64,000 nucleotides of DNA from Takakia lepidozioides (GCA_030704615.1 CM060731.1:48918001-48982000); one strand, 5' to 3'; positions 23,560 to 63,966 are shown, counted from the first letter of the stretch. Numbers and translations: made by a program. The notes: generated by a model from the letters alone, not told the origin.

Positions 23560-25000
23560 TGTATAACTTGTCCCAGTATAATTTTTTCTGAGACCTAACA
23601 AGCTGATTGATATCTTTACGGAGCTGGTAGTACCTCGCCCACAATTCTCTGTTGGTTTCCAAATTGCAGCACTGTTTATAGAGGGCTCCTGTCTCAGCTA
23701 TCTTGAGTTTAATCTCATTAGTCCCCAACTAACTGCTCTACCGCAGACAATTAGTTTCCTCCCAATGATCTTGTCAGCCACGGAGGAAACGAAACTCTCC
23801 CAAGAGTCCACTGCTCTTTCGACTTCATTTATTGCGTTAACAGAGCGTGACTGAAGTTCTTGGAGCGATTGGACAAAATGAGGGAGAGCCTCTTGCAAGG
23901 CCTGGACGTACTCAGCCTTGACCTCCTCATTGTGGAATTTTTCTATGCGCCACTTCCGAATCGAACGTTTCACAGATCTCTTGGTGGTGGGAAAACACCT
24001 TTTGATCTCAGTCCAAACCAGCAAGTGGTCAGAGGTACCAATATCAGTTCTGTCGATCAACACATCGGCACACTGGGGGAACAAAATTTTGTCCATTATG
24101 ATATAGTCCACAATGGAACGTTCCCCAGTTTGGGGTTCCTCACGAGTCCACTGCACTTGGTCACCTCTTGTCCTGTTATTCAAGGTCAAAAGCTGAAGCT
24201 CTTCTAGACAGTTAATTAACCGTCTGCCATTAGAATTCAGCTCGTCCTCACCAAAAGGTCCAATGATATCGTCCTGATGGATCCCTTTGCCCACCCAGGC
24301 ATTGAAGTCCCCCAATAGTACCACCTGACCTTTGGCAAGGAACGAAGCACAGTCCAGCTTCAAACTTGTGAGGCCTTGTCTGCGTCAGCACACAGGGTCC
24401 CCTCTGTGGGCATGTAAACACAACGGACAAAGAGGTCCGGCAGAGTACTCATGCCGCCCTTCAAATTCAGTTTTAGCCAGATACTATGCTCGTACCTCAA
24501 ACCCTTGTTGATAATTTCACAATTGTCAAACAAGAAATCACGGACGAACTTATTTGAGATTGAATTGATGCAGGACTCTATTAGAAGCACTTTTGGTCAT
24601 TGCAACCTTCAACGTACCCCTGTTATCAAGTCTCGAGATGGTACCATTAACCATGAAATCCAAGCCTAAGGTAGAGCATGTAGTTTTAAAGGACACATCG
24701 TCCATCCTGGGATTCACCCCAAAAACTACACATGAAGCCCTAGATTTGGCATAAGTAACCAATTCCCAGGGATCACCCTGAGGAGTGTTGATGTTGATAG
24801 GAGCTAAATTTTTGATTGTTTTCACAGGCCATAAGTTTAAGCACAGGAACCAACCCGAGCCCCAAGTGCCGAGTATGCTAGACAGAGCATACGACTGCCC
24901 AATTTGGGCGGAGGGGCTGCCCCCAAGCGGTAGGAGTCCGCTTGTTACCATTCAGAGATCACACTCCAGGGAGTTGCAGGGAATGGCCCGTGTAGGCATA
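23560..25000 (-). mobile_element. LINE fragment: partial APE-type endonuclease domain, possibly with an ORF1 remnant
   Basis: ORFs 24360-24590 and 23698-24363 carry CVYMP, VVLLGDFNAWVG, NSNGRRL, SIVDYII and TSDHLLVW (EEP endonuclease motifs). Frameshifted, with no RT domain following. Confidence 0.85.
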
Positions 25001-25880: not shown

Positions 25881-27860
25881 AGTATATATGTGTAGTATAT
25901 ATCTCTCCTTTAGGCTACGCGACTCATGTCGTGACTTAGGCCTTACCACAAGCAAAGGATGGACGGGCAGCAGGAATAGACGGGCCAGCATGTATATTCA
26001 GCTTATACTCTCGTATGTATATGTGTATATGATACATATACATATATATATATACATGATAATATATTATATATATTATATACAAAACTGCGTTAAAAAT
26101 TATAGATTACAATTCAATTGAATTGCAGTCAGCAATTCAATTGAATTGCAAATTAGGGTTAGTTCAATTGAATTGGCATCGCAATTCAATTGAATTGGCA
26201 TCTGATCAAGTGAATTGCGCTGCATTTCACATCAAGGCCTTTTTGGAATTCCCTACCCGCCCCCCCTTGGTTGTACATATTAGGTTGGATCTAAAATTGG
26301 GCCTTACAGCGCATGCAGTCAGCACTCGTGAAAAGAAGTCTGTGCGTCTGTACATGTAAGTTAGGCCTATATGTGACCTTGTTAGGTGTGTTACGAAAAT
26401 CGTGATTCGGTTTCTCCTCTCAGATTTAGGTGCAGTTCAACAGGTCAATTTGGCAGTTATTACGCTTGTGGTTGAGAACAGTGCAGAGGTCGTGTTTTGT
26501 GTTGCTTTTTTAATATTTGTCTTCTGTGCAAGTTCAAGAACGCAGAATGTCTGAAGTGAGATTTGGACCCCTTGCTCTGGATCGCTCGGGGAAATCCCAC
26601 CTGACCTGTTTGAAATGATACTTGAGTATCATTTTAAACTTACCCACCTTCCACTTCCGAAATTGTCTCAGCTGCTCGATTCGCCAGTTCTCATTACCAA
26701 GTGAGAGGCGTACCTAGCCATCTGGAATCATACAAAACTACAGGACACACATACAAATCTCGTGTAACAAAACTCAAGTAGAATTATTATTACAACTTTG
26801 ATGGCAGAATTGGTAGACCATGTGGAGTTGATCAAATTGAGCCTTGGTAGAAAAACTAAGTGCTAGCTTTCAAATTCAGGGAAACCATGGTTGAAGGTAA
26901 AAGTAGGCAATCCTATCCCAAATCATACTCTCACAAACAGGGTAGGTGCATACGATTAGCCCTAAATCTTTGTTGGCAGGTAGCCACTAGCCACAGTCAT
27001 TAAGACTTGCTATCGAAAATTCGCGGGTACCATAGGAATGAATCGGTTTCGAAGCAACAAACATGCTTATTAGATCATTTGGCATGGGATGATCATTAAT
27101 AATACAAATACTGCGACACTGTGAGTTGTAATGTCGCAGTAATGTTTGTGTATATAGTAAGGCAAAGTCCAAGAGCAATGAAATATGATGAAAGCATCAC
27201 CATCCCAACTGAGATTTTGTTGGTGACAAAGTCCAGTGGGAGTACTCAGAGGCAAGAGTCACAGGGTCAAGTTTATTGGCTCCTTCCTCAAGGCATCAAT
27301 GTTGGAAAAATGGATGATCCTGATATACCTTCACTGGAAAATACCCAAACATGACAGATATACCCCTCCACTAGTTAACATAGCTATTGCTATTAATGAA
27401 CATCAAATATATTCAAAAATATATATATATTTTTGGATTTTGTTAAATATATTTTTAATCAGTAACAGCCATCGGTAAATGGCTGGAGACCGGTGATAGT
27501 CGGTCGCTTTTCTTCCCTCACAACAAGCATTCGTGTCTTTTACGACTGAGGAAACAACTCATTTTAAGTCGAAAATGACATAAAACAGGAATCGACTCAA
27601 GTAGTAAAGGATTTGTTACAACATGGAAGTTGTATCGAACATCCAATGATTGGAGTGGTAAAGGCCGCAGACACTTGAACGACTGCGAAACTTTAATTCC
27701 CACTATTGCTGGAGACCACGTGTCGTAAGCGGGCCACCCGCCCGTGTGTCTAACTTTTTGGGCTGACTTTGACTTTTCCCTCCGCATGAGGGGAATGATA
27801 CCTGTGTTTCGCCGGGTATCAAACCGGGCATCAACCCGAGTCTCTCCTAACCTAACCTAC

Positions 27861-28233: not shown

Positions 28234-28539
28234 CAGCGCCGCGACGAGCAGCATTGCTGCCACGTGGCCACGGGCCCGGGGCGCCACCTGGTAGTCGATC
28301 ACGTAACTTGCAGTGCTACATGCCCAGTGGCAACTGCGACTACGGAAGTCGGAGCAACCACTGCTTTACTACTTTAAATGAAGTGCTCGAATTACTTGAA
28401 CAATCATTCATAGTGGTTCATGCTTTGTAGTTTTGGTGTTTGTAGTGAGCCGACTAGTACATACGCATGTTATGCCATACAAGAGAACTCATCATGCATT
28501 AGAAATGCGAAAACGATGAAAGACATGCCATGAAACAAA

Positions 28540-28830
28540 ATGAAATGAAATGAAACAAAACGGTACTTTATTACATCTGCGGAAAGCTCAAAGAGCTTAT
28601 GGGACAAAATGAACCAAAGTAAAAAAAACAGCCCAAAAGCTACTACTGCTCTGGGGATTGCCTAAGAATCAAGGCCTCATGCAAGTGCAGTTGTGATCCT
28701 CATAATGCAAGACTTCCTGACAGATTGAGTTCCACGGAATAGACCATCTACCCATGGAGGTTTATTGTAGCCATTGATCCACAGGGAATCATAGGTAATT
28801 TTGTGCTTGAAATCTGGCCATTTAGGATGA
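28540..28830 (-). mobile_element. LINE 3' end remnant with (TTTCA)n tail
   Basis: (TGAAA)n at 28540-28556 is followed by the shared motif ggaaagctcaaagagcttatgggacaaaatg. Confidence 0.55.
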
Positions 28831-29939
28831 ATCTGGACCCACTCTCTATCCCCGCTCATTCAGCTTTCCATGCTTTTGCACAAATCATGCATTCATCCTT
28901 GCCTTGCTGCTAGGTGCTGACAATGACAGCCTAGATTTGTTGTAGGAAACACCCAACTCAGCTTATCACACTAGTTCCAATGTTGAATTGTGTCTGCTAC
29001 TCTCTGAAATGTAACAGGCATTCACCTTTTTGCCTCGGTTGTCCCATCATTGATTGGGGCAGAAAAGTATCCATTCCACAGCTTCTCCTCATCTCTGTTA
29101 CTTGTTTTTTGATACTTTCCTGTTGTCACATTGGCAGTATCATGTCAAAGTCACTCCAAACTAGATTCACTCAACTAGCTAACTTGCAAAATTCAACATG
29201 GAAATTTAGGGCCGTTTCTGATAAGAGGGAAAAACAAGGTGAAATGTATTGAAGAAGATGTCTTCATTAGCAGTGTCTGATTTTATTAATTGTGCCGCTG
29301 CTGCTAGTTAATCATCTACCCGTGCAGGTTTCATGTAGCTACAGAGTCAATCTGGAGCTTGAAGCCCGGCCCTCTTGGGTGAATTTGCACCCACACTCTA
29401 TCCCTGCTCCTTCAACTATCCATGTCTCTACACAAATCATGCATACATCATTGCCTTGCTGCTAGCAGCTGATGATGACAGCCTAGATTTGTTCTAGCAA
29501 ACACCCCAACCCTACTTGGAAAAACAGGTCGAAATGTATTGAGAAATGTGCCTTCATTAGCAGCACCTCATGCTATCAATTGTGCTACTGCGGCTACTGT
29601 TCCACTTGCAACAAATGACCATCTACTCCAGCTGATTTCTTGTAGCTATTGATCCTTCAGCCTGAACCTGAACATGAATCTGGACCTCTATCCCTGGTCC
29701 CTCAGCTATCCCCGGTCCTTCAGCTATCCCTACCCGTGTACAGATCATGAGTACATCCCTCAGCCTTGTTGCTAGCAGCTGACAGTTACGGCGTGAAGTT
29801 CTTCCAGAAAACACCTACTTAACAGTATTTCCAATTCTGAATTGCAACTGATTCTCTCTGTAGTCGAATAAGCACTCATCTTTTTGTCTCCATTGTCCCC
29901 CCACTGACTGGGTCGGGAAAGTATTCATTCCAAAGCTTC

Positions 29940-30610
29940 TCTTTAGGGCAGTGGTTAGATTGACATTTGGTACAATTCCAGCTTTGATGATATCCCCATG
30001 CACCTCTTTGCCCTTCTCCAGGGCTGCCAGGCTTGCACAAGCATTGCAAATGCACACAAACATGATGTGCTTCCCCCATCATTTGCTCATAGGTCTCCAA
30101 AGCCTCCATCCCACGTCCCTGCCATGCATACCCTGCAAGCATCGCACTCCACGACACCACATCTCGTTCAACCATAGTGTCGAACACTCCCTTTGCATCC
30201 TAGATGCACCCACATTTTGCAAACCTGTCCACCAGGGTATTGTTCAGAATGCCAGCTTTGAAGATGTCGCCATGCACCTCTTCCCCCTTTTGCACTGCTG
30301 CCAGGGCAGTGTTCAGATTGACATTTGGTACAACTACTAGCTTTGATGATATCCACATGCACCTCTTTGCCTTTCTCCAGGGCTGCCAGGCTCGCACAAG
30401 CATTGCAAATGCACACAAACATGATGTGCTTCCCCCACCCATTTGCTCATAGGTCTCCAAAGCCTCCATCCCACGTCCCTGCCGTGCATACCCTACAAGC
30501 ATCGCACTCCACGACACCACATCTCGCTCAGCCATAGTGTCGAACACTCCCTTTGTATCCTAGATGCACCCAAATTTTGCAAACATGTCCACCAGGGTAT
30601 TGTTCAGAAT
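29940..30610 (-). pseudogene. PLS-class PPR pseudogene fragment, internally duplicated (~360-bp period), truncated by the large element
   Basis: MFDTMVERDVVSWSAMLAGYA..GRGMEALETYEQM and FVCICNACASLAALEKGKEVH motifs lie in different frames. 29980-30250 is repeated at 30340-30610. Confidence 0.85.
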
Positions 30611-30720
30611 GCAGCGTAGCTACGGCGTGAGCCCAGCCCCGTGAGCCTGGGAGCTGAGCTCACGTTCAAGCTTTGAAGCGTGAGCTGAGCTCACGCTTCA
30701 GGGAAGCGTGAGCGGCACGA
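30611..30720 (+). promoter_or_regulatory. Left terminus with clustered CGTGAGC motifs (putative transposase-binding sites)
   Basis: Four CGTGAGC and two GCTCACG in 110 bp. Palindromes CGTAGCTACG and TGAAGCGTGAGCT-G-AGCTCACGCTTCA. Confidence 0.6.
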
Positions 30721-31031
30721 ATCTGCTGGAGAAGCAGGTCCTATAGGCGAGGATTGCAGGAAGAGGGCCTATTACCGTGGACAAAACAAAGGAGGCCACC
30801 ATGCACCATGTCTGCAATGCGTGCCAAAAAAGAGGAATATGTAAATATGGCAGATTTGAGCTCAGAATGATTGACACAGTTTATTTCAATTCACAGAGAG
30901 ACGCTTACAATGAATCGCAAGTGCATTTGCCCTGGTTCCGTGAACGAAATGTATATGTTTGTCATAAAATGAAAAGTCTTCACACGGCAACCTGGAAACC
31001 AGCATGGGAAGCGGGCATGGCTCGTATGTGT

Positions 31032-34000
31032 TCAAAGAGAAGTTGGCGGAGCTCTACGCGAGGTGTCCTGCTGCAGAAGGGTGATGACTTCTCCGTAGCC
31101 TAGTGTGGCTTGGTGAATGAATTGGTCTCTCTTACCGTCGCAACACATAATTACAAGGTATATGTAATATTGATGCTTGCAGGGGACCCACTTCCCTCTC
31201 ATGCCGAGAGCGCCCTCACGCATCGTTACAAAATCCGGACAAGTGCACGAAGGGAAATTCCCGATGGTAACCTGATATTCTTTGGCATGAAGAACTGAGC
31301 CAATTGACAGCACTGTGTAAATCCGTCCATACCCCGGGGAAGGGACTTCGGTGATACGAGTCACCCTAGCCTGCAAAATTCTAGCCGATTCCATCTTGCA
31401 TTCGTGATCTGCACCCGAAGCAACACGGCGCACTGTTTTTCCATCTCTTTGTGTTGGGTGGGAGTCGGCACCGGGTGGAGGCATTGTCGGAGCATGTGGC
31501 ACATCTGTGCCGACAGTGCATAAGGGCACCACCCGGGACCGTGCAAGACAAAACCCTCTCTCCTCCAGCATGCTTATCTCGGTTGAGGACAGCGATGTCC
31601 CAATTTTCACAGGCCAAATTGCGGGGGGAGGGGGCTTCATTATCACGGAAGGACGAACTGTTCCCTTCACGCATCGTGCCATATCGTCTGGGCAGAACCA
31701 AAACTTGTGCTCTTTTGACTCCCCACTATGATAAGGTCGGAACAACCCTGTGAATGTTGGAGCTGGAGTCCCCCTTGAGCCTTTGCATATTTTTGATTTG
31801 CATTTCTTGAATGAGGGGGTCCGAATTGCCATGCAAGCCACTCTAGATCCTGGTGGGGTGCGTTCTATATGCCAGTCACTATCAATGCAATCAGATTCCT
31901 GCACCATGGCCACCACCTCCTCCAATGGGATTTCCGCTGCTATGCTTGCATGTTCTGCACCTGCTCCACAGGAGGAGGACCCACCTGGGAAGGGGCCGGC
32001 ACAGGACTTAGTTTGCACTGGAGACACCTTTGGCACAGAGAAATTGACCCTGTCTGGCCTATGGGAATCTCCATCTGACCCTGGAAGAGTGTTTAATTTC
32101 CTTTTGCATGATCCAAATCTTTCCTCGCCTTCCAAATGGGGGAGCCTGGATTGCAAAGGGGAGCCTTCAGTGCACCTGTTTAGAGCTCTGGCCATCTTTG
32201 ACGGGTCTCCGGACCTACTCGCAGCCCTTAGCATCAACAAAGTCGTATCGGGGCCCTTCCCTCCACCCCGTCCCATCAGAAAATTGCGGTACTTGGTTTG
32301 TTGTGTAAGTGCCCGCACCATGTCATCAGCAGTGGCCACATACAAGTCACGACCTGCTTTGGTAGACTGCTGCATCCAGGCGTTGTGAACAGTCTCTGCC
32401 AAATTACACGATGGCATGTCGGCCAAGTCCTCCAAGGACATGTCCTGCAGGAGGCATTGCATGGAAATGTGAGGAAAGAAAAGAAATGGTAGAGGTTCTT
32501 CAAGTGACAATCGAACAACCCCAAATGAACAGGCACGATGCAAAGTGCAATTTGTGTTTAAGGAAAACTTGTGAGGCTTACCGTCGTCATGAAAGCTCCC
32601 CACTGTCTGTACCTGAAGTGCCAGAAAACCAACCAGTCCTCCAACTCCTTCAGGTGGATACCTGTAGCAGCACCAGAGGAGAACCACCAAGCCCGGATTG
32701 CCTGGTAAGTGCTCTCAGCTTCTCCCATTGAGGTGGCATTCTTGTACTTCATACAGAGCCTTCTATGCTCCAACTGAAGGTCAGGGCGAATGCAGCTCTT
32801 TGTATGACGTGCCAGAGATTGACTCCAATGGAAGAGGCATGTGCGCTCCCTATTTTCCATTGGGACCTTAGGATCCCCCGAACCAAACACGCGCCGCACT
32901 GCATTGAAATTTGCCTGTGCACTATCAGCCATGAAGCCCGCAAAATTTGTGTTCTGTATTCCATTGCGCTGCATGACGGCCAGGAGGGAATTCCACATGA
33001 GCATCTGGGATTCAGTGTCCTCCGACTGCATATCACAAATTGCTATGGAGAGCACACGCTGGTACGCTGGATCATACACATGGCACGCCATGGTTGTCCA
33101 ACCCTTCACCCGTTTGCAGTGATCAAACATTAACCAACATTTAGCCAAATCTCCTCCAGGTTGCATTCGGCGGACAATGCTCACACCACTGCCTTGGCCC
33201 ACAGCGGACATCTTGAACAAATACACTTTGGACGAGCCCTGGCCAGGGAACATACTGTTTTGAATGAATTCATAGCGACTCCTTCGTTTGAGGTCCATAA
33301 TGTTGTCCATGAATCCAGTAGTGCCTGTGCCCATTCTGAGTGCATTCACCTGGTTTCGAATATTGGGAGAGCTCAACACGGAGAAATGGTCCATGACTGC
33401 CTCAAGGGAATCTGCATCCAGCATTGGCTGTGTCGCATCCCCTTCACCCAGTATGTGTTTTTCCAGGAATGCCTTGCTAGCTGCAAGCGCTATAGCAGAA
33501 GGTGTTGCACAAGGGGCATTGTGGAACTCTTGCTTCAGTAGATTTCTAGCGATGTCCACGCTATCCCTGCAACTCCCTTTGGACACAGGATGCTCGTGTG
33601 CACCCATATGAATGCAGGCACGAGTCATTGTCTTGCATCGATGTGCCACCTGATACATACGAGCGTGGCAAACAGAAACACAGGACGGGGAAAGTTTGCA
33701 GAACCTGCACACAAAAGTATTGGTCTTGGGAGGTGCAAGCCCTGGGGTGAAAGGATTCAGGGGCACACCTTCCCACTCACTTTCGTTTGGCTGAGCGCTG
33801 TTTCTCAGCCGAGGGCAAGAAATATTCAGGCACTTGCAATGCCCAACGCAAACCGACCTCCGAAATTTCAAGCCAATGTCGTTATGGATGTTCGACGTTT
33901 TTGTCCTGCACCAAGGATGTCCGTCATGTTTCTTGTCCATGCCCTGCAGAAGCCCAGCCAGTCCACTGGAAGACGTGGGAGGGTTGAGCTCAAACAAGAT

Positions 34001-34611
34001 GTCCCCATCAAACTGAGCTGGCACGTATTGAACCCGTTGCACTGGAAGGGACTCCCAATCAACAAAACGTAGCTCGCTCTTGCACCCAGGCACACCTGCG
34101 AGGGCTTTCAATTTTGGAATGACACTCGTTATCTCTTGCAATTCGTCATCATCCAATAAGGGAGTTTGCACTGGCGGAGGAATCTCAGAAACATCCTCCG
34201 AGGACGAGTCCGAAAGAGTCACGAAGGTAGTGGATGTGCTCACCTCTTGTTTCACAGGAACTGTGCCCTTTTGTTGCACGACCGATGCTGCAGTGCCAGG
34301 GGTAACGACTGATCCTGCTGATTGTCTTCTCTCTTTTCCAGGACACGGTATGTTCCTGGAAGGACTCTCCACTTCCTTCCACACTCGCCAACCAAGGGTT
34401 TCTCCAAGTGCCCAGAATCCAAATTCCCATCCTCGTCATACACCTCTTTCTGAACAAGCAGAGAACCCAACTCCAGCGGGAACACTGTAACCAGCTCATC
34501 CTCATGAACAACTGCATACCCATCGTCGTCTGCAGTGGCAGTCAGTGGAAGAGTACCTGCATTGGAATGGAATCGAGCGAGTGCATCTCGCTCCCTCGAC
34601 ATGTTTTCCAT
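31032..34611 (-). pseudogene. Mutator-like DDE/SWIM transposase, left copy, 1-nt frameshift near 34340
   Basis: Exons 32582-34611 and 31032-32444 (137-bp GT-AG intron), mirroring the right copy. It reads gtcctggaaaa where the right copy has gtccttggaaaa, splitting the N-terminus (257-aa and 608-aa ORFs). This may be a sequencing indel. Confidence 0.75.
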
Positions 34612-35548
34612 CACTGAACGAAACTGGCGATTCAGAACGGAATCCCCGAACTGAGAGCCCGTAATTATCGAAAGTGGAAATACCACCAGCAAACTGAGGT
34701 CAACAAGGGTAGCACCAAACCAAAGGCTGCCGGCGATGCATGCCAAGGATGTAGGGATGACGTGCACCTTCACCTCCCACCAACCAGAAAAACCGTTTTG
34801 AAAGACCAGAGCCACAAGAAGCCGTGCTGTTTTTGGATGGAAAACAAACCCTGAAAATGACATGAAACCATCCATTATGAAATGACGGCAACAACCCTGG
34901 AGAGCAGTAAACAGGAAGATCCGATTGTAATGAGATTGTGTTGCGCCAGAATAGCACAGAACAAACACTGACACTCCAAGAGATACCTCGCACGAATGTG
35001 TGCAACACATGGTCATATCCGACACAATCCTTTATACCGAATGACCCCATGGGGACGGTCACGGCAAAAAAAAAACCACAGGGCATGCAGTACAACACAC
35101 GTGGATGCATATGTGAAGCATAACAATTATTGCGAATCTGGAAGAACTGCTCGGAATTGAAAAAGCACTACATTTCTACGGCACATTCGAATTTGAAAGA
35201 AGGCAAGGAGGCCGCCATGTATTGGCAGGCGGCGAAGTACATCTGACATATATCCAAATGCATGCAACGGATGTTCTTTTTCTTCGGCGCTTTATTAGCT
35301 GGGTAATACAAAGACGCCAAAATGGATGAATTCCGTTCGCACACAATATCAACACCCGCATCCAAATACGGTTGACAACGTCCATTTTTATTTTTGTTAC
35401 ATGCGATACCAGCACTTGTTGCAAACGTCAAACTGGAGAGCTCCAGGGGCATCGTGGGGAGCCCTTGTTTCCAGCGGAGGAGAAAGAGAAGGAAGTCATT
35501 ATACTTCACGAGTTCTAGAAATAGAACAGGAATAGAGCTAGATATAGA

Positions 35549-35910
35549 ATGAGGATGGAAAGAGTGGAGGAAGAGGAAAAGGAGGAAGAAGAGGGAATAC
35601 ATGAAAGTGTGGCGATGGAGGAGCAGGAATCTGGAGAAGAACAACAACCCACCATAGTTCCAGGAACAGGCGAGGAGGACACTGCGTCTGAGGGAGAGAC
35701 AGACGACATGGAGGAAGATGTTGACACTGGCCTCACGAAGAATCTGACCACGGGAAAGAGGAAGGGGGAGAGGCTCACCTACATAGTCGGCGAAGAGAGC
35801 AGCCCGAAGCGGAAAGGGTCCCCGGCAATTGGGGAGTCTTCTCGAGTAGCTACGAAAAAGGTAAAATCTACAGGACCCACATTTGTGAAGAATTCGGCTT
35901 TCAATGGCAG
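35549..35910 (+). CDS. Acidic, NLS-bearing putative first exon of a second element gene (left copy)
   Basis: MRMERVEEEEKEEEEG...EGETDDMEED...GKRKG...SPKRKGSP...TKKVK. It ends at a canonical donor CAG|GTATTT (35910/35911), 35 bp before the array starts. Confidence 0.5.
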
Positions 35911-35944
35911 GTATTTGAGAAAGAAAGAAAGAACCATTCAGTGG

Positions 35945-38900
35945 CAGCTCAAACAGTGTGCGTTGCCGCACACTGTTTGAGCTGCACATGTCACTGTTTA
36001 ATGGTGTGCAAATTCTTCCTTCAACGACACCTTTCTGAGGATGAAATGAAATGACCCCGCACTGCCAGCTCAAACAGTGTGCGGCAACGCACACTGTTTG
36101 AGCAGATCTTTTCAATGTTTTAGGGTGCAAAATTTGGCCTTGGAGTCAGTTATCTGCGGGTGAAATGAACCCTTCACTGCCAGCCCAAATAGTGTGCGGC
36201 AACGCACACTTTTTGAGCTGAACATTTCAATGTTTCAGGGTGCAAAATTTGGACTTCAGGGGCACCTTTTGAGGATGAAATGAACCCTGCACTGCCAGCT
36301 CAAACAGTGTGCGGCAACGCACACTGTTTGAGCTGAACATTTCAATGTGTTTAAGGGTGCAAAATTGGACTTCATGGGTACCTTTCTGAGGATGGAATGA
36401 ACCCTCCACTGCCAGCTCAAACAGTGTGCGGCAACGCACACTGTTTGAGCTGAACATTTCAATGTTTTAGGGTGCAAAATTTTGTCTTGCTGTCTGTTAT
36501 CTGAGGTTGAAATGAACCCTTCACTGCCAGCTCAAACAGTGTACGGCAACGCACACTGTTTGAGCAGATCTTTTCAATGTTTTAGGGTGCAAAATTTGGT
36601 CTTGCAGTCAGTTATCTGAGGGATGAAATGACCCTTCACTGCCAGCTCAAACAGTGTGCGGCAACGCACACTGTTTGAGCTGAACATTTCAATGTTTTAG
36701 GGTGCAAAATTTGGACTTCATGGGCACCTTTCTGAGGATGGAAGGAACCCTGCACTGCCAGCTCAAACAGTGTGCGGCAACGCACACTGTTTAAGCTGAA
36801 CATTTCAATGTTTCAGGGTGCAAAATTTGGACTGTCAGGGCACCTATCTGAGGATGAAATGAACCCTTCACTGTCAGCCCAAACAGTGTGCGGCAACGCA
36901 CACTGTTTGAGCAGATCTTTTCAATGTTTTAGGGTGCAAAATTTGGGCTTGCAGTCAGTATCTGAGGGATGAAATGAACCCTTCACTGCCAGCTCAAACA
37001 GTGTGCGGCAACGCACACTGTTTGAGCTGAACATTTCAATGTTTTAAGGTGCAAAATTTGGACTTCAGGGGCACCTTTCTGAGGATGAAATGAACCCTGC
37101 ACTGCCAGCTCAAACAGTGTGCGTATGTTTTAGGGTGCAAAATTTGGTCTCGCAGTCAGTTATCTGAGGGTGAAATGAACCCTTCACTGCCAGCTCAAAC
37201 AGTGTGCGGCAACGCACACTGTTTGAGCTGAACATTTCAATGTTTTAGGGTGCAAATTTGGACTTCATGGCACCTTTCTGAGGATGGAATGAACCCTGCA
37301 CTGCCAGCTCAAACAGTGTGCGGCAACGCACACTGTTTGAGCTGAACATTTCAATGTTTCAGGGTGCAAAATTTGGACTGCAGGGCCACCTATCTGAGGA
37401 TGAAATGAACCCTTCACTGTCAGCCCAATCAGTGTGCGGCAACGCACACTGTTTGAGCTGAACATTTCAATGTTTTAGGGTGCAAAATTTGGACTTCAGG
37501 GGCACCTATCTGAGGATGAAATGAACCCTTCACTGCCAGCTCAAACAGTGTGCGTTGCCGCACACTGTTTGAGCTGAACGTTTCAATGTTTAGGGTGCAA
37601 AATTGGAGATTGCAGGGGCACCTATCTGAGGATGAAATGAACCCTTCACTGTCAGCCCAAACAGTGTGCGGCAACGCACACTGTTTGCGCTGAACATTTC
37701 AATGTTTTAGGGTGCAAAATTTGGACTTCAGGGGCACGTATCTGAGGATGAAATGAACCCTTCACTGTCAGCTCAAACAGTGTGCGTTGCCGCACACTGT
37801 TTGAGCTGAACGTTTCAATGGTTAGGGTGCAAAATTTGGACTGCAGGGGCACCTATCTGAGGATGAAATGAACCCTTCACTGTCAGCCCAAACAGTGTGC
37901 GGCAACGCACACTGTTTGAGCTGAACATTTCAATGTTTTAGGGTGCAAAATTTGGACTTCAGGGGCACCTATCTGAGGATGAAATGAACCCTTCACTGCT
38001 AGCTCAAACAGTGTGCGGCAACGCACACTGTTTGAGCTGACCGTTTTCAATGGTTTAGGGTGCCAAAATTTGGACTGCAGGGGCACCTATCTGAGGATGA
38101 AATGAACCCTTCACTGTCAGCCCAAACAGTGTTCGGCAACGCACACTGTTTGAGCTGAACATTTCAATGTTTTAAGGTGCAAAATTTGGACTTCAGGGGC
38201 ACCTATCTGAGGATGAGGATGAAATGAACCCTTCACTGCCAGCCCAAACAGTGTGCGGCAACGCACACTGTTTGAGCCGAACATTTCAATGTTTTAGGGT
38301 GCAAAATTTGGACTTTAGGGGCACATTTCTGAGGATGGAATGAACCCTGCACTGCCAGCTCAAACAGTGTGCGGCAACGCACACTGTTTGAGCTGAACAT
38401 TTCAATGTTTCAGGGTGCAAATTTGGACTTCAGGGGCACCTTTTGAGGATGAAATGAACCCTGCACTGCCAGCTCAAACAGTGTGCGGCAACGCACACTG
38501 TTTGAGCAGATCTTTCAATGTTTTAGGGTGCAAAATTTGGTCTTGCTGTCAGTTATCTGAGGGTGAAATGAACCCTTCACTGCCAGCTCAAAACAGGTGC
38601 GGCAACGCACACTGTTTGAGCTGAACATTTCAATGTTTCTGGGTGCAAAATTTGGACTTCAGGGGCACCTATCTGAGGATGAAATGAACCCTTCACTGCC
38701 AGCCCAAACAGTGTGCGGCAACGCACACTGTTTGAGCTGAACATTTCAATGTTTTAGGGTGCAAAATTTGGACTCCAGGGGCGCCTTTCTGAGGATGAAA
38801 TGAACCCTGCACTGCCAGCTCAAACAGTGTGCGGCAACGCACACTGTTTGAGCAGAACTTTTCATTGTTTAGGGTGCAAAATTTGGATTTCTAGGCACAT

Positions 38901-39240
38901 ATCTGAGGGTGAAATGAACCCTTCACTGCCAGCTCAAACAGTGTGTTGTAACGCACACTGTTTGAGCAGAACATATCAATATTTAAGGGCGCAACATTCG
39001 GCCTTCATGGGCAGATATCTGTGGATGAAATGAACCCTTCACTGCTAGTTCAAATAGTGTGCGGCAACGCACACTGTTTAAGCTGAACATTTCAATGTTT
39101 TAGGGTGCAAAATTTGGACTTCAGGGGCACATTTCTGAGGATAAAATGAACCTTTCACTGTCAGCTCAAACAGTTTGCGGAACCGCACACTGTTTAAGCA
39201 AAACATATCAATATTGAAGGGCGCAACATTCGGCCCTCAT
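35945..39240. repeat. Tandem array, ~28 x 116-bp hairpin-containing units (left arm)
   Basis: Each unit has CAGCTCAAACAGTGTGCG-gcaa-CGCACACTGTTTGAGCTG followed by aacatttcaatgttttagggtgcaaaatttgg-[variable ~16 nt]-tctgaggatgaaatgaacccttcactg. Confidence 0.97.
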
Positions 39241-39740
39241 NNNNNNNNNNNNNNNNNNNNNNNNNNNNNNNNNNNNNNNNNNNNNNNNNNNNNNNNNNNN
39301 NNNNNNNNNNNNNNNNNNNNNNNNNNNNNNNNNNNNNNNNNNNNNNNNNNNNNNNNNNNNNNNNNNNNNNNNNNNNNNNNNNNNNNNNNNNNNNNNNNNN
39401 NNNNNNNNNNNNNNNNNNNNNNNNNNNNNNNNNNNNNNNNNNNNNNNNNNNNNNNNNNNNNNNNNNNNNNNNNNNNNNNNNNNNNNNNNNNNNNNNNNNN
39501 NNNNNNNNNNNNNNNNNNNNNNNNNNNNNNNNNNNNNNNNNNNNNNNNNNNNNNNNNNNNNNNNNNNNNNNNNNNNNNNNNNNNNNNNNNNNNNNNNNNN
39601 NNNNNNNNNNNNNNNNNNNNNNNNNNNNNNNNNNNNNNNNNNNNNNNNNNNNNNNNNNNNNNNNNNNNNNNNNNNNNNNNNNNNNNNNNNNNNNNNNNNN
39701 NNNNNNNNNNNNNNNNNNNNNNNNNNNNNNNNNNNNNNNN
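39241..39740. other. Assembly gap (500 N) at the palindrome axis
   Basis: Run of N. True size and contig orientation are unknown. Confidence 1.
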
Positions 39741-42700
39741 AAATGTTCAGCTCAAACAGTGTGCGTTGCCGCACACTGTTTGGGCTGACAGTGAAGGGTT
39801 CATTTCATCCTCAGATAGGTGCCCCTGAAGTCCAAATTTTGCACCCAGAAACATTGAAATGTTCAGCTCAAACAGTGTGTGTTGGCGCACACTGTTTGGC
39901 TGACAGTGAAGGGTTCATTTCATCCTCAGATAGGTGCCCCTGAACTCCAAATTTTGCACCGAGAAACATTGAAATGTCCAGCTCAACAGTGTGCGTTGGC
40001 GCACACTGTTTGAGCTGGCAGCGAAGGGTTCATTTCCCTCAGATAACAGACAGCAAGACCAAATTTTGCACCATAAAACATTGAAAAGATTCTGCTCAAA
40101 CAATGTGCGTTGCCCGCATACTGTTTGAGCTGGCAGTGAAGGGTTCATTTCAACCTCAGATAACAGACAGCAAGACCAAATTTTGCACCCCAAAACAGTG
40201 AAATGTTCAGCTCAATCAGTGTGCGTTGCCGCACACTGTTTGGGCTGACAGTGAAGGGTTCATTTCATCCACACATAGGTGCCCCTGAAGTCCAAATTTT
40301 GCAACCACAAACATTGAAATGTTCAGCTCAAACAGTGTGCGTTGCCGCACACTGTTGGGCTGACAGTGAAGGGTTCATTTCATCCTCAAATAGGTGCCCC
40401 TGAAGTCCAAATTTTGCACCCTGAAACATTGAAAATGTTCAGCTCAAACAGTGTGCGTTGCCGCACACTGTTTGGGCTGACAGTGAAGGGTTCATTTCAT
40501 CCTCAGATAGGTGCCCCTGAAGTCCAAATTTTGCAACCTGAAACATTGAAATGTTCAGCTCAAACAGTGTGCGTTGGCGCACACTGTTTGAGCTGGCAGC
40601 GAAGAGTTCATTTCACCCTCAGATAACAGACAGCAAGACCAAATTTTGCACCCTAAAACATTGAAAACATCTGCTCAACAGTGTGCGTTGCCGCACACTG
40701 TTTGAGCTGGCAGTGAAGGGTTCATTTCAACCTCAGATAACAGACAGCAAGACCAAATTTTGCACCCTAAAACATTGAAATGTTCAGCTCAATCAGTGTG
40801 CGTTGCCGCACACTGTTTGGGCTGACAGTGAAGGGTTCATTTCATCCACACATAGGTGCCTCTTAAGTCCAAATTTTGCACCCCGAAACATTGAAATGTT
40901 CGTTCAAACAGTGTGCGTTGCCGCACACTGTTTGGGTGCTGACAGTGAAGGGTTCATTTCATCCTCAGATAGGTGCCCCTGAAGTCCAAATTTTGCACCG
41001 AGAAACATTGAAATGTTCAGCTCAAACAGTGTGCGTTGCCGCACACTGTTTGGGCTGACAGAGAAGGGTTCATTTCATCCTCGAAATAGGTGCCCCTGAA
41101 GTCCAAATTTTGCACCCAGAAACATTGAAATGTTCAGCTCAAACAGTGTGCGTTGCCACACACTGTTTGGGCTGACAGTGAAGGGTTCATTTCAACCTCA
41201 CATAGGTGCCCCTGAAGTCCAAATTTTGCACCCAGAAACATTGAAATGTTCAGCTCAAACAGTGTGCGTTGCCGCACACTGTTTGGGCTGACAGTGAAGG
41301 GTTCATTTCATCCTCAGATAGGTGCCCCTGAAGTCCAAATTTTGCACCGAGAAACATTGAAATGTTCAGCTCAAACAGTGTGCGTTGGCGCACACTGTTT
41401 GAGCTGGCAGCGAAGGGTTCATTTCACCCTCAGATAACAGACAGCAAGACCAAATTTTGCACCCTAAAAACATTGAAAAGATCTGCTCAAACAGTGTGCG
41501 TTGCCGCACACTGTTTGAGCTGGCAGTGAAGGGTTCATTTCAACCTCAGATAACAGACAGCAAGACCAAATTTTGCACCCTAAAACATTGAAATGTTCAG
41601 CTCAATCAGTGTGCGTTGCCGCACACTGTTTGGGCTGACAGTGAAGGGTTCATTTCATCCACACATAGGTGCCCCTGAAGTCCAAATTTTGCACCCTGAA
41701 ACATTGAAATGATCAGCTCAAACAGTGTGCGTTGCCGCACACTGTTTGGGCTGGCAGTGAAGGGTTCATTTCACCCTCAGATAACAGGACCCCTGAAGTC
41801 CAAATTTTGCACCCTAAAACAATGAAAACAGCTCAAAACAGTGTGCGTTGCCGCACACTGTTTGAGCTTTGTGAAGGGTTCATTTCATCCTAGATAACAG
41901 ACAGCAAGACCAAATTTTGCACCCTAAAACATTGAAATGTTCAGCTCAAACAGTGTGCGTTGCCGCACACTGTTGGGCTGACAGTGAAGGGTTCATTTCA
42001 TCCTCTCATAGTGCCTCTGAAGTCCAAATTTTGCACCGAAAAACATTGAAATGTTCAGCTCAAACAGTGTGCGTTGCCGCACACTGTTTGGGCTGACAGT
42101 GAAGGGTTCATTTCATCCTCAAATAGGTGCCCCTGAAGTCCAAATTTTGCACCAAGAAACATTGAAATGTTCAGCTCAAACAGTGTGCATTGCCGCACAC
42201 TGTTTGGTCTGACAGTGAAGGGTTCATTTCATCCTCAGATAGGTGCCCCTGAAGTCCAAATTTTGCACCCTGAAACATTGAAATGTTCAGCTCAAACAGT
42301 GTGCGTTGCCGCACACTGTTTGAGCTGGCAGTGAAGGGTTCATTTCACCCTCAGATAACAGACAGCAAGACCAAATTTTGCACCCTAAAACATTGAAAAA
42401 AGTTGCTCAAACAGTGTGCGTTGCCGCACACTGTTTGAGCTGGCAGTGAAGGGTTCATTTCAACCTCAGATAACAGACAGCAAGACCAAATTTTGCACCC
42501 TGAAACATTGAAATGTTCAGCTCAAACAGTGTGCGTTGCCGCACACTGTTTGAGCTGGCAGTGAAGGGTTCATTTCACCTCAGATAACAGCAAGACCAAA
42601 TTTTGCACCCTAAAACATTGAAATGTTCAGCTCAAACAGTGTGCGTTGCCGCACACTGTTTGAGCTGGCAGTGAAGGGTTCATTTCAACCTCAGATAACA

Positions 42701-43243
42701 GACAGCAAGACCAAATTTTGCACCCTAAAACATTGAAATGTTCAGCTCAAACAGTGTGCGTTGCCGCACACTGTTTGAGCTGGCAGTGAAGGGTTCATTC
42801 CATCCTCAGAAAGGTACCCATGAAGTCCAAATTTTGCACCCTTAAACATTGAAATGTTCAGCTCAAACAGTGTGCGTTGCCGCACACTGTTTGAGCTGGC
42901 AGTGCAGGGTTCATTTCATCCTCAAAAAGGTGCCCTGAAGTCCAAATTTTGCACCCTAAAACATTGAAATGTTCAGCTCAAACAGTGTGCGTTGCCGCAC
43001 ACTGTTTGGGCTGGCAGTGAAGGGTTCATTTCACCCGCAGATAACTGACTCCAAGGCCAAATTTTGCACCCTAAAACATTGAAAAGATCTGCTCAAACAG
43101 TGTGCGTTGCCGCACACTGTTTGAGCTGGCAGTGCGGGGTTCATTTCATCCTCAGAAAGGTGTCGTTGAAGGAAGAATTTTGCACCTTAAACAGTGACAT
43201 GTGCAGCTCAAACAGTGTGCGGCAACGCACACTGTTTGAGCTG
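39741..43243. repeat. Tandem array, ~30 x 116-bp hairpin-containing units (right arm, opposite orientation)
   Basis: Period 116 (gtgaagggtt at 41641 and 41757). Loops read TTGC. Two main unit variants: TAGGTGCCCCTGAAGT and TAACAGACAGCAAGA. Confidence 0.97.
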
Positions 43244-43273
43244 CCACTGAATGGTTCTTTCTTTCTCAAATAC

Positions 43274-43635
43274 CTGCCATTGAAAGCCGAATTCTTCACA
43301 AATGTGGGTCCTGTAGATTTTACCTTTTTCGTAGCTACTCGAGAAGACTCCCCAATTGCCGGGGACCCTTTCCGCTTCGGGCTGCTCTCTTCGCCGACTA
43401 TGTAGGTGAGCCTCTCCCCCTTCCTCTTTCCCGTGGTCAGATTCTTCGTGAGGCCAGTGTCAACATCTTCCTCCATGTCGTCTGTCTCTCCCTCAGACGC
43501 AGTGTCCTCCTCGCCTGTTCCTGGAACTATGGTGGGTTGTTGTTCTTCTCCAGATTCCTGCTCCTCCATCGCCACACTTTCCTGTATTCCCTCTTCTTCC
43601 TCCTTTTCCTCTTCCTCCACTCTTTCCATCCTCAT
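43274..43635 (-). CDS. Acidic, NLS-bearing putative first exon of a second element gene (right copy)
   Basis: Mirror of 35549-35910 with one H/Q difference and the same splice donor at 43272-43273. Confidence 0.5.
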
Positions 43636-44567
43636 TCTATATCTAGCTCTATTCCTGTTTCTAGAACTCGTGAAGTATAATGACTTCCTTCTCTTTCTCC
43701 TCCGCTGGAAACAAGGGCTCCCCACGATGCCCCTGGAGCTCTCCAGTTTGACGTTTGCAACAAGTGCTGGTATCGCATGTAACAAAAATAAAAATGGACG
43801 TTGTCAACCGTATTTGGATGCGGGTGTTGATATTGTGTGCGAACGGAATTCATCCATTTTGGCGTCTTTGTATTACCCAGCTAATAAAGCGCCGAAGAAA
43901 AAGAACATCCGTTGCATGCATTTGCGATATATGTCAGATGTACTTCGCCGCCTGCCAATACATGGCGGCCTCCTTGCCTTCTTTCAAATTCGAATGTGCC
44001 GTAGAAATGTAGTGCTTTTTCAATTCCGAGCAGTTCTTCCAGATTCGCAATAATTGTTATGCTTCACATATGCATCCACGTGTGTTGTACTGCATGCCTG
44101 TGGTTTTTTTTTTGCCGTGACCGTCCCCATGGGGTCATTCGGTATAAAGGATTGTGTCGGATATGACCATGTGTTGCACACATTCGTGCGAGGTATCTCT
44201 TGGAGTGTCAGTGTTTGTTCTGTGCTATTCTGGCGCAACACAATCTCATTACAATCGGATCTTCCTGTTTACTGCTCTCCAGGGTTGTTGCCGTCATTTC
44301 ATAATGGATGGTTTCATGTCATTTTCAGGGTTTGTTTTCCATCCAAAAACAGCACGGCTTCTTGTGGCTCTGGTCTTTCAAAACGGTTTTTCTGGTTGGT
44401 GGGAGGTGAAGGTGCACGTCATCCCTACATCCTTGGCATGCATCGCCGGCAGCCTTTGGTTTGGTGCTACCCTTGTTGACCTCAGTTTGCTGGTGGTATT
44501 TCCACTTTCGATAATTACGGGCTCTCAGTTCGGGGATTCCGTTCTGAATCGCCAGTTTCGTTCAGTG

Positions 44568-47500
44568 ATGGAAAACATGTCGAGGGAGCGAGATGCACTC
44601 GCTCGATTCCATTCCAATGCAGGTACTCTTCCACTGACTGCCACTGCAGACGACGATGGGTATGCAGTTGTTCATGAGGATGAGCTGGTTACAGTGTTCC
44701 CGCTGGAGTTGGGTTCTCTGCTTGTTCAGAAAGAGGTGTATGACGAGGATGGGAATTTGGATTCTGGGCACTTGGAGAAACCCTTGGTTGGCGAGTGTGG
44801 AAGGAAGTGGAGAGTCCTTCCAGGAACATACCGTGTCCTTGGAAAAGAGAGAAGACAATCAGCAGGATCAGTCGTTACCCCTGGCACTGCAGCATCGGTC
44901 GTGCAACAGAAGGGCACAGTTCCTGTGAAACAAGAGGTGAGCACATCCACTACCTTCGTGACTCTTTCGGACTCGTCCTCGGAGGATGTTTCTGAGATTC
45001 CTCCGCCAGTGCAAACTCCCTTATTGGATGATGACGAATTGCAAGAGATAACGAATGTCATTCCAAAATTGAAAGCCCTCGCAGGTGTGCCTGGGTGCAA
45101 GAGCGAGCTACGTTTTGTTGATTGGGAGTCCCTTCCAGTGCAACGGGTTCAATACGTGCCAGCTCAGTTTGATGGGGACATCTTGTTTGAGCTCAACCCT
45201 CCCACGTCTTCCAGTGGACTGGCTGGGCTTCTGCAGGGCATGGACAAGAAACATGACGGACATCCTTGGTGCAGGACAAAAACGTCGAACATCCATAACG
45301 ACATTGGCTTGAAATTTCGGAGGTCGGTTTGCGTTGGGCATTGCAAGTGCCTGAATATTTCTTGCCCTCGGCTGAGAAACAGCGCTCAGCCAAACGAAAG
45401 TGAGTGGGAAGGTGTGCCCCTGAATCCTTTCACCCCAGGGCTTGCACCTCCCAAGACCAATACTTTTGTGTGCAGGTTCTGCAAACTTTCCCCGTCCTGT
45501 GTTTCTGTTTGCCACGCTCGTATGTATCAGGTGGCACATCGATGCAAGACAATGACTCGTGCCTGCATTCATATGGGTGCACACGAGCATCCTGTGTCCA
45601 AAGGGAGTTGCAGGGATAGCGTGGACATCGCTAGAAATCTACTGAAGCAAGAGTTCCACAATGCCCCTTGTGCAACACCTTCTGCTATAGCGCTTGCAGC
45701 TAGCAAGGCATTCCTGGAAAAACACATACTGGGTGAAGGGGATGCGACACAGCCAATGCTGGATGCAGATTCCCTTGAGGCAGTCATGGACCATTTCTCC
45801 GTGTTGAGCTCTCCCAATATTCGAAACCAGGTGAATGCACTCAGAATGGGCACAGGCACTGCTGGATTCATGGACAACATTATGGACCTCAAACGGAGGA
45901 GTCGCTATGAATTCATTCAAAACAGTATGTTCCCTGGCCAGGGCTCGTCCAAAGTGTATTTGTTCAAGATGTCCGCTGTGGGCCAAGGCAGTGGTGTGAG
46001 CATTGTCCGCCGAATGCAACCTGGAGGAGATTTGGCTAAATGTTGGTTAATGTTTGATCACTGCAAACGGGTGAAGGGTTGGACAACCATGGCGTGCCAT
46101 GTGTATGATCCAGCGTACCAGCGTGTGCTCTCCATAGCAATTTGTGATATGCAGTCGGAGGACACTGAATCCCAGATGCTCATGTGGAATTCCCTCCTGG
46201 CCGTCATGCAGCGCAATGGAATACAGAACACAAATTTTGCGGGCTTCATGGCTGATAGTGCACAGGCAAATTTCAATGCAGTGCGGCGCGTGTTTGGTTC
46301 GGGGGATCCTAAGGTCCCAATGGAAAATAGGGAGCGCACATGCCTCTTCCATTGGAGTCAATCTCTGGCACGTCATACAAAGCGCTGCATTCGCCCTGAC
46401 CTTCAGTTGGAGCATAGAAGGCTCTGTCTGAAGTACAAGAATGCCACCTCAATGGGAGAAGCTGAGAGCACTTACCAGGCAATCCGGGCTTGGTGGTTCT
46501 CCTCTGGTGCTGCTACAGGTATCCACCTGAAGGAGTTGGAGGACTGGTTGGTTTTCTGGCACTTCAGGTACAGACAGTGGGGAGCTTTCATGACGACGGT
46601 AAGCCTCACAAGTTTTCCTTAAACACAAATTGCACTTTGCATCGTGCCTGTTCATTTGGGGTTGTTCGATTGTCACTTGAAGAACCTCTACCATTTCTTT
46701 TCCTTCCTCACATTTCCATGCAATGCCTCCTGCAGGACATGTCCTTGGAGGACTTGGCCGACATGCCATCGTGTAATTTGGCAGAGACTGTTCACAACGC
46801 CTGGATGCAACAGTCTACCAAAGCAGGTCGTGACTTGTATGTGGCCACTGCTGATGACATGGTGCGGGCACTTACACAACAAACCAGGTACCGCAATTTT
46901 CTGATGGGACGGGGTGGAGGGAAGGGCCCCGATACGACTTTGTTGATGCTAAGGGCTGCGAGTAGGTCCGGAGACCCGTCAAAGATGGCCAGAGCTCTAA
47001 ACAGGTGCACTGAAGGCTCCCCTCTGCAATCCAGGCTCCCCCATTTGGAAGGCGAGGAAAGATTTGGATCATGCAAAAGGAAATTAAACACTCTTCCAGG
47101 GTCAGATGGAGATTCCCATAGGCCAGACAGGGTCAATTTCTCTGTGCCAAAGGTGTCTCCAGTGCAGACTAAGTCCTGTGCCGGCCCCTTCCCAGGTGGG
47201 TCCTCCTCCTGTGGAGCAGGTGCAGAACATGCAAGCATAGCAGCGGAAATCCCATTGGAGGAGGTGGTGGCCATGGTGCAGGAATCTGATTGCATTGATA
47301 GTGACTGGCATATAGAACGCACCCCACCAGGATCTAGAGTGGCTTGCATGGCAATTCGGACCCCCTCATTCAAGAAATGCAAATCAAAAATATGCAAAGG
47401 CTCCAGGGGGACTCCAGCTCCAACATTCACAGGGTTGTTCCGACCTTATCATAGTGGGGAGTCAAAAGAGCACAAGTTTTGGTTCTGCCCAGACGATATG

Positions 47501-48148
47501 GCACGATGCGTGAAGGGAACAGTTCGTCCTTCCGTGATAATGAAGCCCCCTCCCCCCGCAATTTGGCCTGTGAAAATTGGGACATCGCTGTCCTCAACCG
47601 AGATAAGCATGCTGGAGGAGGGAGGGTTTTGTCTTGCACGGTCCCGGGTGGTGCCCTTATGCACTGTCGGCACAGATGTGCCACATGCTCCGACAATGCC
47701 TCCACCCGGTGCCGACTCCCACCCAACAAAAAGAGATGGAAAAACAGTGCGCCGTGTTGCTTCGGGTGCAGATCACGAATGCAAGATGGAATCGGCTAGA
47801 ATTTTGCAGGCTAGGGTGACTCGTATCACCGAAGTCCCTTCCCCGGGGTATGGACGGATTTACACAGTGCTGTCAATTGGCTCAGTTCTTCATGCCAAAG
47901 AATATCAGGTTACCATCGGGAATTTCCCATCGTGCACTTGTCCGGATTTTGTAACGATGCGTGAGGGCGCTCTCGGCATGAGAGGGAAGTGGGTCCCCTG
48001 CAAGCATCAATATTACATATACCTTGTAATTATGTGTTGCGACGGTAAGAGAGACCAATTCATTCACCAAGCCACACTAGGCTACGGAGAAGTCATCACC
48101 CTTCTGCAGCGGGACACCTCGCGTAGAGCTCCGCCAACTTCTCTTTGA
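44568..48148 (+). CDS. Mutator-like DDE transposase with GCM/WRKY-like N-terminal zinc domain and C-terminal SWIM finger (~1147 aa), intact right copy
   Basis: Exons 44568-46598 and 46736-48148 (donor ACG|GTAAGC, acceptor TGCAG|GAC, phase 0). Catalytic candidates: WLMFDH (D1), FMADSAQAN (D2), CLFHW (CxxH), CNLAETVH (E). SWIM finger: SCTCPDF...PCKHQY. The start codon is inferred. AATAAA at 48295. Confidence 0.85.
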
Positions 48149-48459
48149 ACACATACGAGCCATGCCCGCTTCCCATGCTGGTTTCCAGGTTGCCGTGTGA
48201 AGACTTTTCATTTTATGACAAACATATACATTTCGTTCACGGAACCAGGGCAAATGCACTTGCGATTCATTGTAAGCGTCTCTCTGTGAATTGAAATAAA
48301 CTGTGTCAATCATTCTGAGCTCAAATCTGCCATATTTACATATTCCTCTTTTTTGGCACGCATTGCAGACATGGTGCATGGTGGCCTCCTTTGTTTTGTC
48401 CACGGTAATAGGCCCTCTTCCTGCAATCCTCGCCTATAGGACCTGCTTCTCCAGCAGAT

Positions 48460-48569
48460 TCATGCCGCTCACGCTTCCCTGAAGCGTGAGCTCAGCTCAC
48501 GCTTCAAAGCTTGAACGTGAGCTCAGCTCCCAGGCTCACGGGGCTGGGCTCACGCCGTAGCTACGCTGC
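48460..48569 (-). promoter_or_regulatory. Right terminus with clustered CGTGAGC motifs
   Basis: Reverse complement of 30611-30720 with one substitution. Confidence 0.6.

Positions 48570-59739: not shown

Positions 59740-63966
<4,227 letters not shown>

Follow-up and report, generated by a model that had tools for sequence, protein, structure and literature searches.

Large DNA transposons in which a ParB-like gene accompanies the transposase have been described in algae. In Ectocarpus, Sola1-1_Ec32 carries a gene for a ParB-like protein with an N4-cytosine/N6-adenine (N4C/N6A) methyltransferase opposite its transposase (PMC12477816), and in Bostrychia a ParB-like gene of Plavaka elements (PAG2/PAG3), with counterparts in Chondrus Mutators, lies next to tandem arrays of inverted repeats (10.1101/2025.02.11.637652); for both, a function in self-binding and self-modification has only been proposed. 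Here we describe a Mutator-type transposon family in a 64,000-nucleotide (nt) stretch of the Takakia lepidozioides genome (GCA_030704615.1 CM060731.1:48918001-48982000; hereafter the window, with positions counted from its start), where two copies face each other across an assembly gap, each with a transposase, an acidic exon and a long array of palindromes. Sequence comparison with its relatives indicates that this family most likely belongs to the group in which a ParB-like/methyltransferase helper gene lies next to palindrome arrays.

Like the algal elements, the Takakia family is a large DNA transposon with a palindrome array inside the element and a ParB-like/methyltransferase gene in its relatives. 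It differs from them in its GCM-DDE-SWIM Mutator carrier, its land-plant host, its array of at least 29-31 units of 116 bp, and in that the helper is seen in relatives only and not in the window. The original prediction, made from the sequence alone, had proposed a candidate new system; with the design already described for algal transposons, the locus is not categorically new. The literature searched held no land-plant report of transposons with ParB-like/methyltransferase helpers, and such helpers with palindrome arrays of their own have so far been predicted from algal genomes only. The land-plant family combines an intact transposase, an array of ~30 units, copies that differ by 0.3% and a palindrome core also conserved in the relative L089. 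It offers a concrete protein-site pair for testing whether the DNA marks on transposons are written or protected by the elements themselves. The family matters more than the giant palindrome formed by its two copies, which probably serves mainly to mark a scaffold join.

Other described systems share single features with this locus. In the VANDAL elements of Arabidopsis, the element-encoded regulator VANC targets non-coding tandem repeats whose turnover outpaces that of the remaining element (PMC5735166). The Takakia family is likewise a Mutator-type element with tandem repeats that change faster than the remainder, but VANC, by its description, binds a short non-palindromic motif and removes methylation, whereas the helper considered here is a predicted ParB-like/amino-methyltransferase and its site a long palindrome. 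With the MuDR/Mutator-like element (MULE) superfamily, which is IS256-related, the family shares a DDE core with CxxH and SWIM motifs, fold matches to ISCth4 and GCM, and a 9-bp duplication in the relative L007; unlike MuDR, its relatives have short, imperfect and unlike ends in place of long terminal inverted repeats (TIRs), its transposase has a GCM-type DNA-binding domain, and its genes diverge from the centre rather than converge from the ends. The arms of a foldback element bracket a single insertion that has a target duplication, and their repeats are terminal. At face value, the locus resembles foldback and Mutator/Foldback elements such as Tm1 (PMC3169594) in having long inverted arms with internal tandem repeats; it differs in that the repeats are internal, no duplication is present and a scaffold gap lies at the centre.

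Anatomy of the two copies

Self-BLAST revealed a single large inverted match in the window (30611-39233 against 48569-39947, 95.2% overall), with a left arm of 8,630 bp and a right arm of 8,829 bp whose similarity ends exactly at 30611 and 48569. In each arm, a terminus and a Mutator transposase of the GCM-DDE-SWIM type are accompanied by an acidic exon running divergently and by an array of 116-bp units, 29 on the left and 31 on the right (Table 1). The 5,324 bases aligned outside the arrays include 18 substitutions between the arms (~99.7% identity), with five small indels in addition, and the transposases differ at eight amino acids, four per exon. The mirror arms of about 8.6 and 8.8 kb, the eight amino-acid differences, the several indels and the differing inner arrays listed in the original prediction were all recovered, as were its arrays of more than 3 kb built from 116-bp hairpin units.

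The arms are two real young copies with biological differences, as had also been foreseen, because of the context of the mutations and because public contigs carry the right-arm form. Nine of the 12 transitions between the arms lie in a CG or CHG context (by our reading of the contexts), as expected in methylated plant DNA; public contigs have the right-arm letter at eight listed sites and the right-arm form at three indels, and the left copy carries private mutations, among them a transposase frameshift at 34339/34340 that the original prediction had overlooked. A single contig placed twice, or sequencing error in the outer arms, is ruled out by the mutation context, the public alleles and the different flanks, and two alleles of one locus are ruled out by flanks that are unrelated. 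Some single-base indels inside the arrays may be consensus errors. At least three public samples carry the element, with deep identical pieces of the inner region. In run X4 the identical or near-identical pieces of that region reached a depth of 317-602, compared with 14-37 for diverged pieces, which suggests tens of close copies, although depth is not copy number. Public contigs from runs X5 and X6 contain a variant with other sequence at 33897-34126, and run X4 contains a deep variant diverging left of 34982, both of which we regard as structural subfamilies.

The transposase is a cut-and-paste enzyme of the GCM-DDE-SWIM Mutator class. The right copy is open across both exons (1,144 amino acids in total), with a DDE core at D494, D560 and E691, CxxH at 589-592 and a SWIM finger. 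Foldseek matched the predicted exon-1 structure to the ISCth4 transposase (E 6e-5), which we take to be of the IS256 family, and to the GCM domain 1odh (probability 0.97), and Pfam returned a weak SWIM match only. Mutator/MULE transposases are recognised by a (C/D)xxH motif 15-45 amino acids beyond the DDE triad's second D (PMC5499845), and the right transposase has C589xxH592 after D560. Relatives of the transposase share 26-64% identity with it, and homologues break at the same intron position; in local tblastn of fetched loci, for which the two open exons of the right transposase were joined as the query, the matches were split at the intron in most loci. Many matches to the transposase came from Joint Genome Institute (JGI) assemblies that are presumably Sphagnum-associated, which together with the PPR-rich flanks points to a seed-free plant as host. 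Exact copies of the window proteins were absent from the protein collection searched, and searches of PDB sequences, PHROGs and phages returned nothing useful.

The arrays have a unit consensus of 116 bp containing a palindrome with an 18-bp stem and a 4-nt loop (folding z ~ -4.9). All 57 occurrences of this palindrome in the window fall within the arrays, against a chance expectation of 0, and an exact match was absent from the JGI metagenomes. Units 1-5 are colinear between the arms and the remainder expanded separately in each, so that turnover is faster in the arrays than elsewhere in the element. A structured RNA or a CRISPR-like array was rejected, with no Rfam match and with spacers that are conserved and not unique.

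The acidic exon contains 29% aspartate plus glutamate and basic KRK motifs. Its positional equivalents are acidic open reading frames (ORFs) in L089 and a small divergent basic/acidic exon in L004, L006 and L007, and it probably forms either the helper gene's 5' exon or an upstream ORF.

Relatives and the gene beyond the array

Comparison with related loci revealed a ParB-like/methyltransferase gene on the far side of the palindromes. In the complete relative L007 (1221-17007, with ends set by alignment to other copies), one transposase diverges from a ParB-like and methyltransferase gene between two unlike ends, flanked by a target duplication matching at eight of nine bases. The termini of the relatives are short imperfect TIRs; the window shows one end type only, the far ends of both copies being missing. 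Recognised features of the Mutator/MULE superfamily also include target duplications of 8-10 bp and TIRs longer than 100 bp. Long-read loci found through the transposase had a ParB-like exon upstream in four of four cases (L001-L004), and loci found through the ParB-like exon had a divergent transposase in three of four (L005-L007). Among 31 non-redundant loci, which are related and are not 31 independent events, a ParB/methyltransferase sequence was upstream of the transposase in 15, compared with downstream in 1 of 22 (p=6e-4; 13 divergent). In a quick tree (midpoint-rooted, near-duplicate loci left out), the window transposase fell on a long branch of its own in a 23-row clade with an SH-like approximate likelihood ratio test (SH-aLRT) support of 100, in which all seven rows with enough upstream DNA carry the helper. 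The relatives' methyltransferase exon scored 0.93 to N6_N4_Mtase clusters and is followed by an exon with a motif-I-like stretch; their other exon is called ParB-like from a DGNHR motif and from the language-model neighbours DUF3723, ParB_N and DUF6551.

The closest relative, L089, has a transposase 54-64% identical to that of the window, followed by divergent acidic ORFs ~1 kb upstream, four palindromes and a ParB-like exon; additional palindromes lie between its later exons and also at the end bearing the transposase, and the locus ends before any methyltransferase exon. Its palindromes share with those of the window the core TGCG-N4-CGCA, with the loop TTGA/TCAA in L089 versus TTGC/GCAA in the window. 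The exact core occurs 52 times in the window arrays, 0 times elsewhere in the window, five times in 9 kb of L089 and four times in 1.03 Mb of other loci; since a palindrome leaves only four free core bases, a chance match has a frequency of ~1/256 before the loop is counted. L004 has a 138-bp palindrome array. Palindromes differ in other families, consistent with the palindrome site and the protein changing together.

The module of transposase, acidic gene and array that had been proposed for the window is thus real as far as it goes and incomplete: to the question of what lies distal to the array, the relatives answer with a ParB-like/amino-methyltransferase gene beyond the palindromes, a gene that is absent from the window. 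We consider it very probable that the window family, too, has a helper gene beyond its array. That the helper binds the palindromes and acts against silencing is a prediction by analogy on which we are evenly divided. In such a mechanism, the dimeric ParB-like domain would bind the palindromes and bring the methyltransferase to the element's own copies, which might be marked or shielded against host silencing by 5-methylcytosine, by analogy with VANC on VANDAL repeats. Selection for more sites could then drive fast growth of the array, as for VANC targets (PMC5735166).

Some related loci showed further features. Downstream of a related transposase, L003 has at least 24 units of 170 bp (16826-21173), each with a 15-1-15 palindrome, an array that probably belongs to a neighbouring element. 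A conserved stretch with short ORFs and no Pfam match lies between the methyltransferase and the far terminus in L005, L006, L007 and L008 (~13100-14700). In L002 (4951-9785), L091 (13255-13776) and L038, the helper is upstream of the transposase in the same direction, or downstream of it, layouts that we attribute to rearranged or neighbouring elements.

Origin of the head-to-head arrangement

The original prediction had left a choice between a single element whose inverted arms each contain a whole transposase and two members of a large family, each carrying a hairpin array inside it, that were joined at the gap. The evidence at the boundaries and the layout of the relatives support the second. 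No target duplication of 2-12 bp was found at the 30611/48569 boundaries, where three of nine bases match. The flanks of the two arms are unrelated: the element is inserted inside the second of two PPR repeats (29945-30252 and 30303-30612, 94.5% identical), and the repeat cut at 30610 is not resumed at 48570, its expected continuation being visible in the neighbouring repeat copy. The locus has two identical transposase-side ends, in contrast to the unlike ends of complete relatives, and inverted arms appeared in none of the relatives checked for them (L001-L008). The 500-N gap at the centre has the default scaffolder length: both 3d-dna and SALSA2 insert 500 N unless told otherwise, and inversions and misjoins are errors to which Hi-C scaffolding is prone (PMC9292758). 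Because of the absent duplication, the unrelated flanks, the two like ends and the default-length gap, a single palindromic element is unsupported, and the giant palindrome is probably an assembly product that flags a scaffold join. A loose automatic search for ends and duplications gave chance-level matches and was discarded.

What the data show is how the arms are built, which class the transposase belongs to, that the two ends have no target site in common and how the relatives are laid out. We propose, as the probable explanation, that the arms are two independent recent insertions of one large Mutator-type family, whose contigs broke in the arrays and were joined head to head by the scaffolder. 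Each long-read contig would have ended inside the internal palindrome array, and Hi-C scaffolding would have set the look-alike contig ends head to head across 500 N in a presumed misjoin, so that each arm would be the transposase half of an element truncated in its array. The whole element is predicted to comprise a terminus, an outward-facing transposase, a two-way promoter, the acidic exon and the palindrome array, followed by a spliced ParB-like/N4C-N6A methyltransferase gene and an unlike second terminus, with a 9-bp target duplication.

Several observations weigh against this explanation and the helper gene that it includes. The helper was not detected in 16 of the 31 related loci and lies downstream of the transposase in L091 (13255-13776), and no ParB or methyltransferase sequence is present in the window, where both arms end in the arrays; many of the long-read loci come from one sample. 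The ParB label is without fold confirmation, the predicted model being too poor for fold assignment, and the acidic exon had no homologue among 1.84 billion proteins. The public contigs are from short reads, none spanning even 5.7 kb of the element, and no read crosses the gap or either array. Finally, L005 and L006 show both ends yet no target duplication, weakening the duplication test.

A real head-to-head join, unlikely in our view, would also predict that the flanks are unrelated and that a target duplication is lacking. Copies from two different sites would have recombined through their palindromes or mirror array halves. Their transposase halves would thereby have been fused and the intervening DNA inverted or translocated, and the near-perfect 8-kb inverted repeat would then have broken the assembly. 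In favour of this reading, every unit has two-fold symmetry across 40 bp and the loops are found in either orientation (four flipped). Against it, no polarity switch was seen inside either array, the fixed 500-N gap holds no sequence evidence, long near-perfect palindromes are unstable, and contig breaks in long arrays are a simpler cause. It is correspondingly doubtful that the palindrome arrays, as probable helper binding sites, double as orientation-free recombination sites through which a very young family, its transposase still intact, made a palindrome of ~18 kb and rearranged a chromosome.

Somewhat less probable still is that the contigs are true neighbours on the chromosome and that the gap hides at least 15 kb, made up of the far half of each element plus the intervening DNA. 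Hi-C joins usually mirror proximity, and the 500-N gap is uninformative on size, but this arrangement requires two insertions of a young family side by side in opposite orientation. The window has PPR-like repeats on either side; because they are very abundant in the organism, they are no sign of proximity. A single foldback-like element of ~18 kb, mobile as a unit with a whole transposase gene in each TIR, is very improbable: although its arms share 99.7% identity across 5.3 kb, their ends fall on the same base, and a transposase could in principle pair two like ends, there is no target duplication, the flanks do not rejoin, and the complete relatives have unlike ends and one transposase, with no inverted arms in L001-L008.

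Features of the window

Table 1. Positions of the two copies, the gap between them and the left flank in the window.
Feature	Position	Strand	Remarks
Left flank, two tandem degenerate PPR repeats, outside the element	29945..30610	-	Pfam PPR, E 1e-6
Transposase-side terminus, left copy	30611..30790	+	G start, TGAGC repeats, hairpins, 13-bp subterminal motif at 30768
Left transposase exon 2 (catalytic E, zinc finger, SWIM)	31032..32444	-	Weak Pfam SWIM on right-arm equivalent
Left transposase exon 1, frameshifted	32582..34602	-	1-bp deletion at 34339/34340; public contigs have the extra base
Left 0.95-kb region between divergent start codons	34603..35548	.	Probable two-way promoter
Left acidic exon, 104 amino acids	35549..35860	+	GT donor at 35861
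Left array, 29 units of ~116 bp, each with an 18-4-18 palindrome; ends at contig end	35945..39240	+	
Assembly gap, exactly 500 N, only N run in the window	39241..39740	.	
Right array, 31 units; ends at contig end	39741..43243	-	
Right acidic exon	43324..43635	-	
Right transposase exon 1, open (N-terminal folded domain, GCM-like domain, D494, D560, C589xxH592)	44577..46598	+	
Right transposase exon 2, open (E691, zinc finger, SWIM 1074-1098)	46736..48148	+	
Transposase-side terminus, right copy	48390..48569	-	Same end type as at 30611

The 13-bp subterminal motif is present in both termini (30768-30780 and 48400-48412) and is conserved near the ends in L002, L003, L005-L008, L013 and L092, making it a candidate transposase binding site. 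Degenerate PPR repeats are numerous in the window (28500-30610, ~2000-3750, 56700-56875 and 62240-62450), and the repeat at 30260-30610 belongs to a very abundant family, with ~10x the summed depth of the transposase in public runs. Loose contig ends at 30611 in public data were considered as an empty site and ruled out, as they derive from paralogous PPR repeats.

Elsewhere in the window, a piece of an F-box/Kelch-like beta-propeller gene lies at 54764-55998 and a fragment of a long interspersed nuclear element (LINE)-type endonuclease at 23698-24363, both on the minus strand. An inverted pair at 19907-20215 and 25893-26255, ~350 bp long, 80% alike and 5.7 kb apart with a TA-rich centre, possibly represents two copies of a small non-autonomous element.

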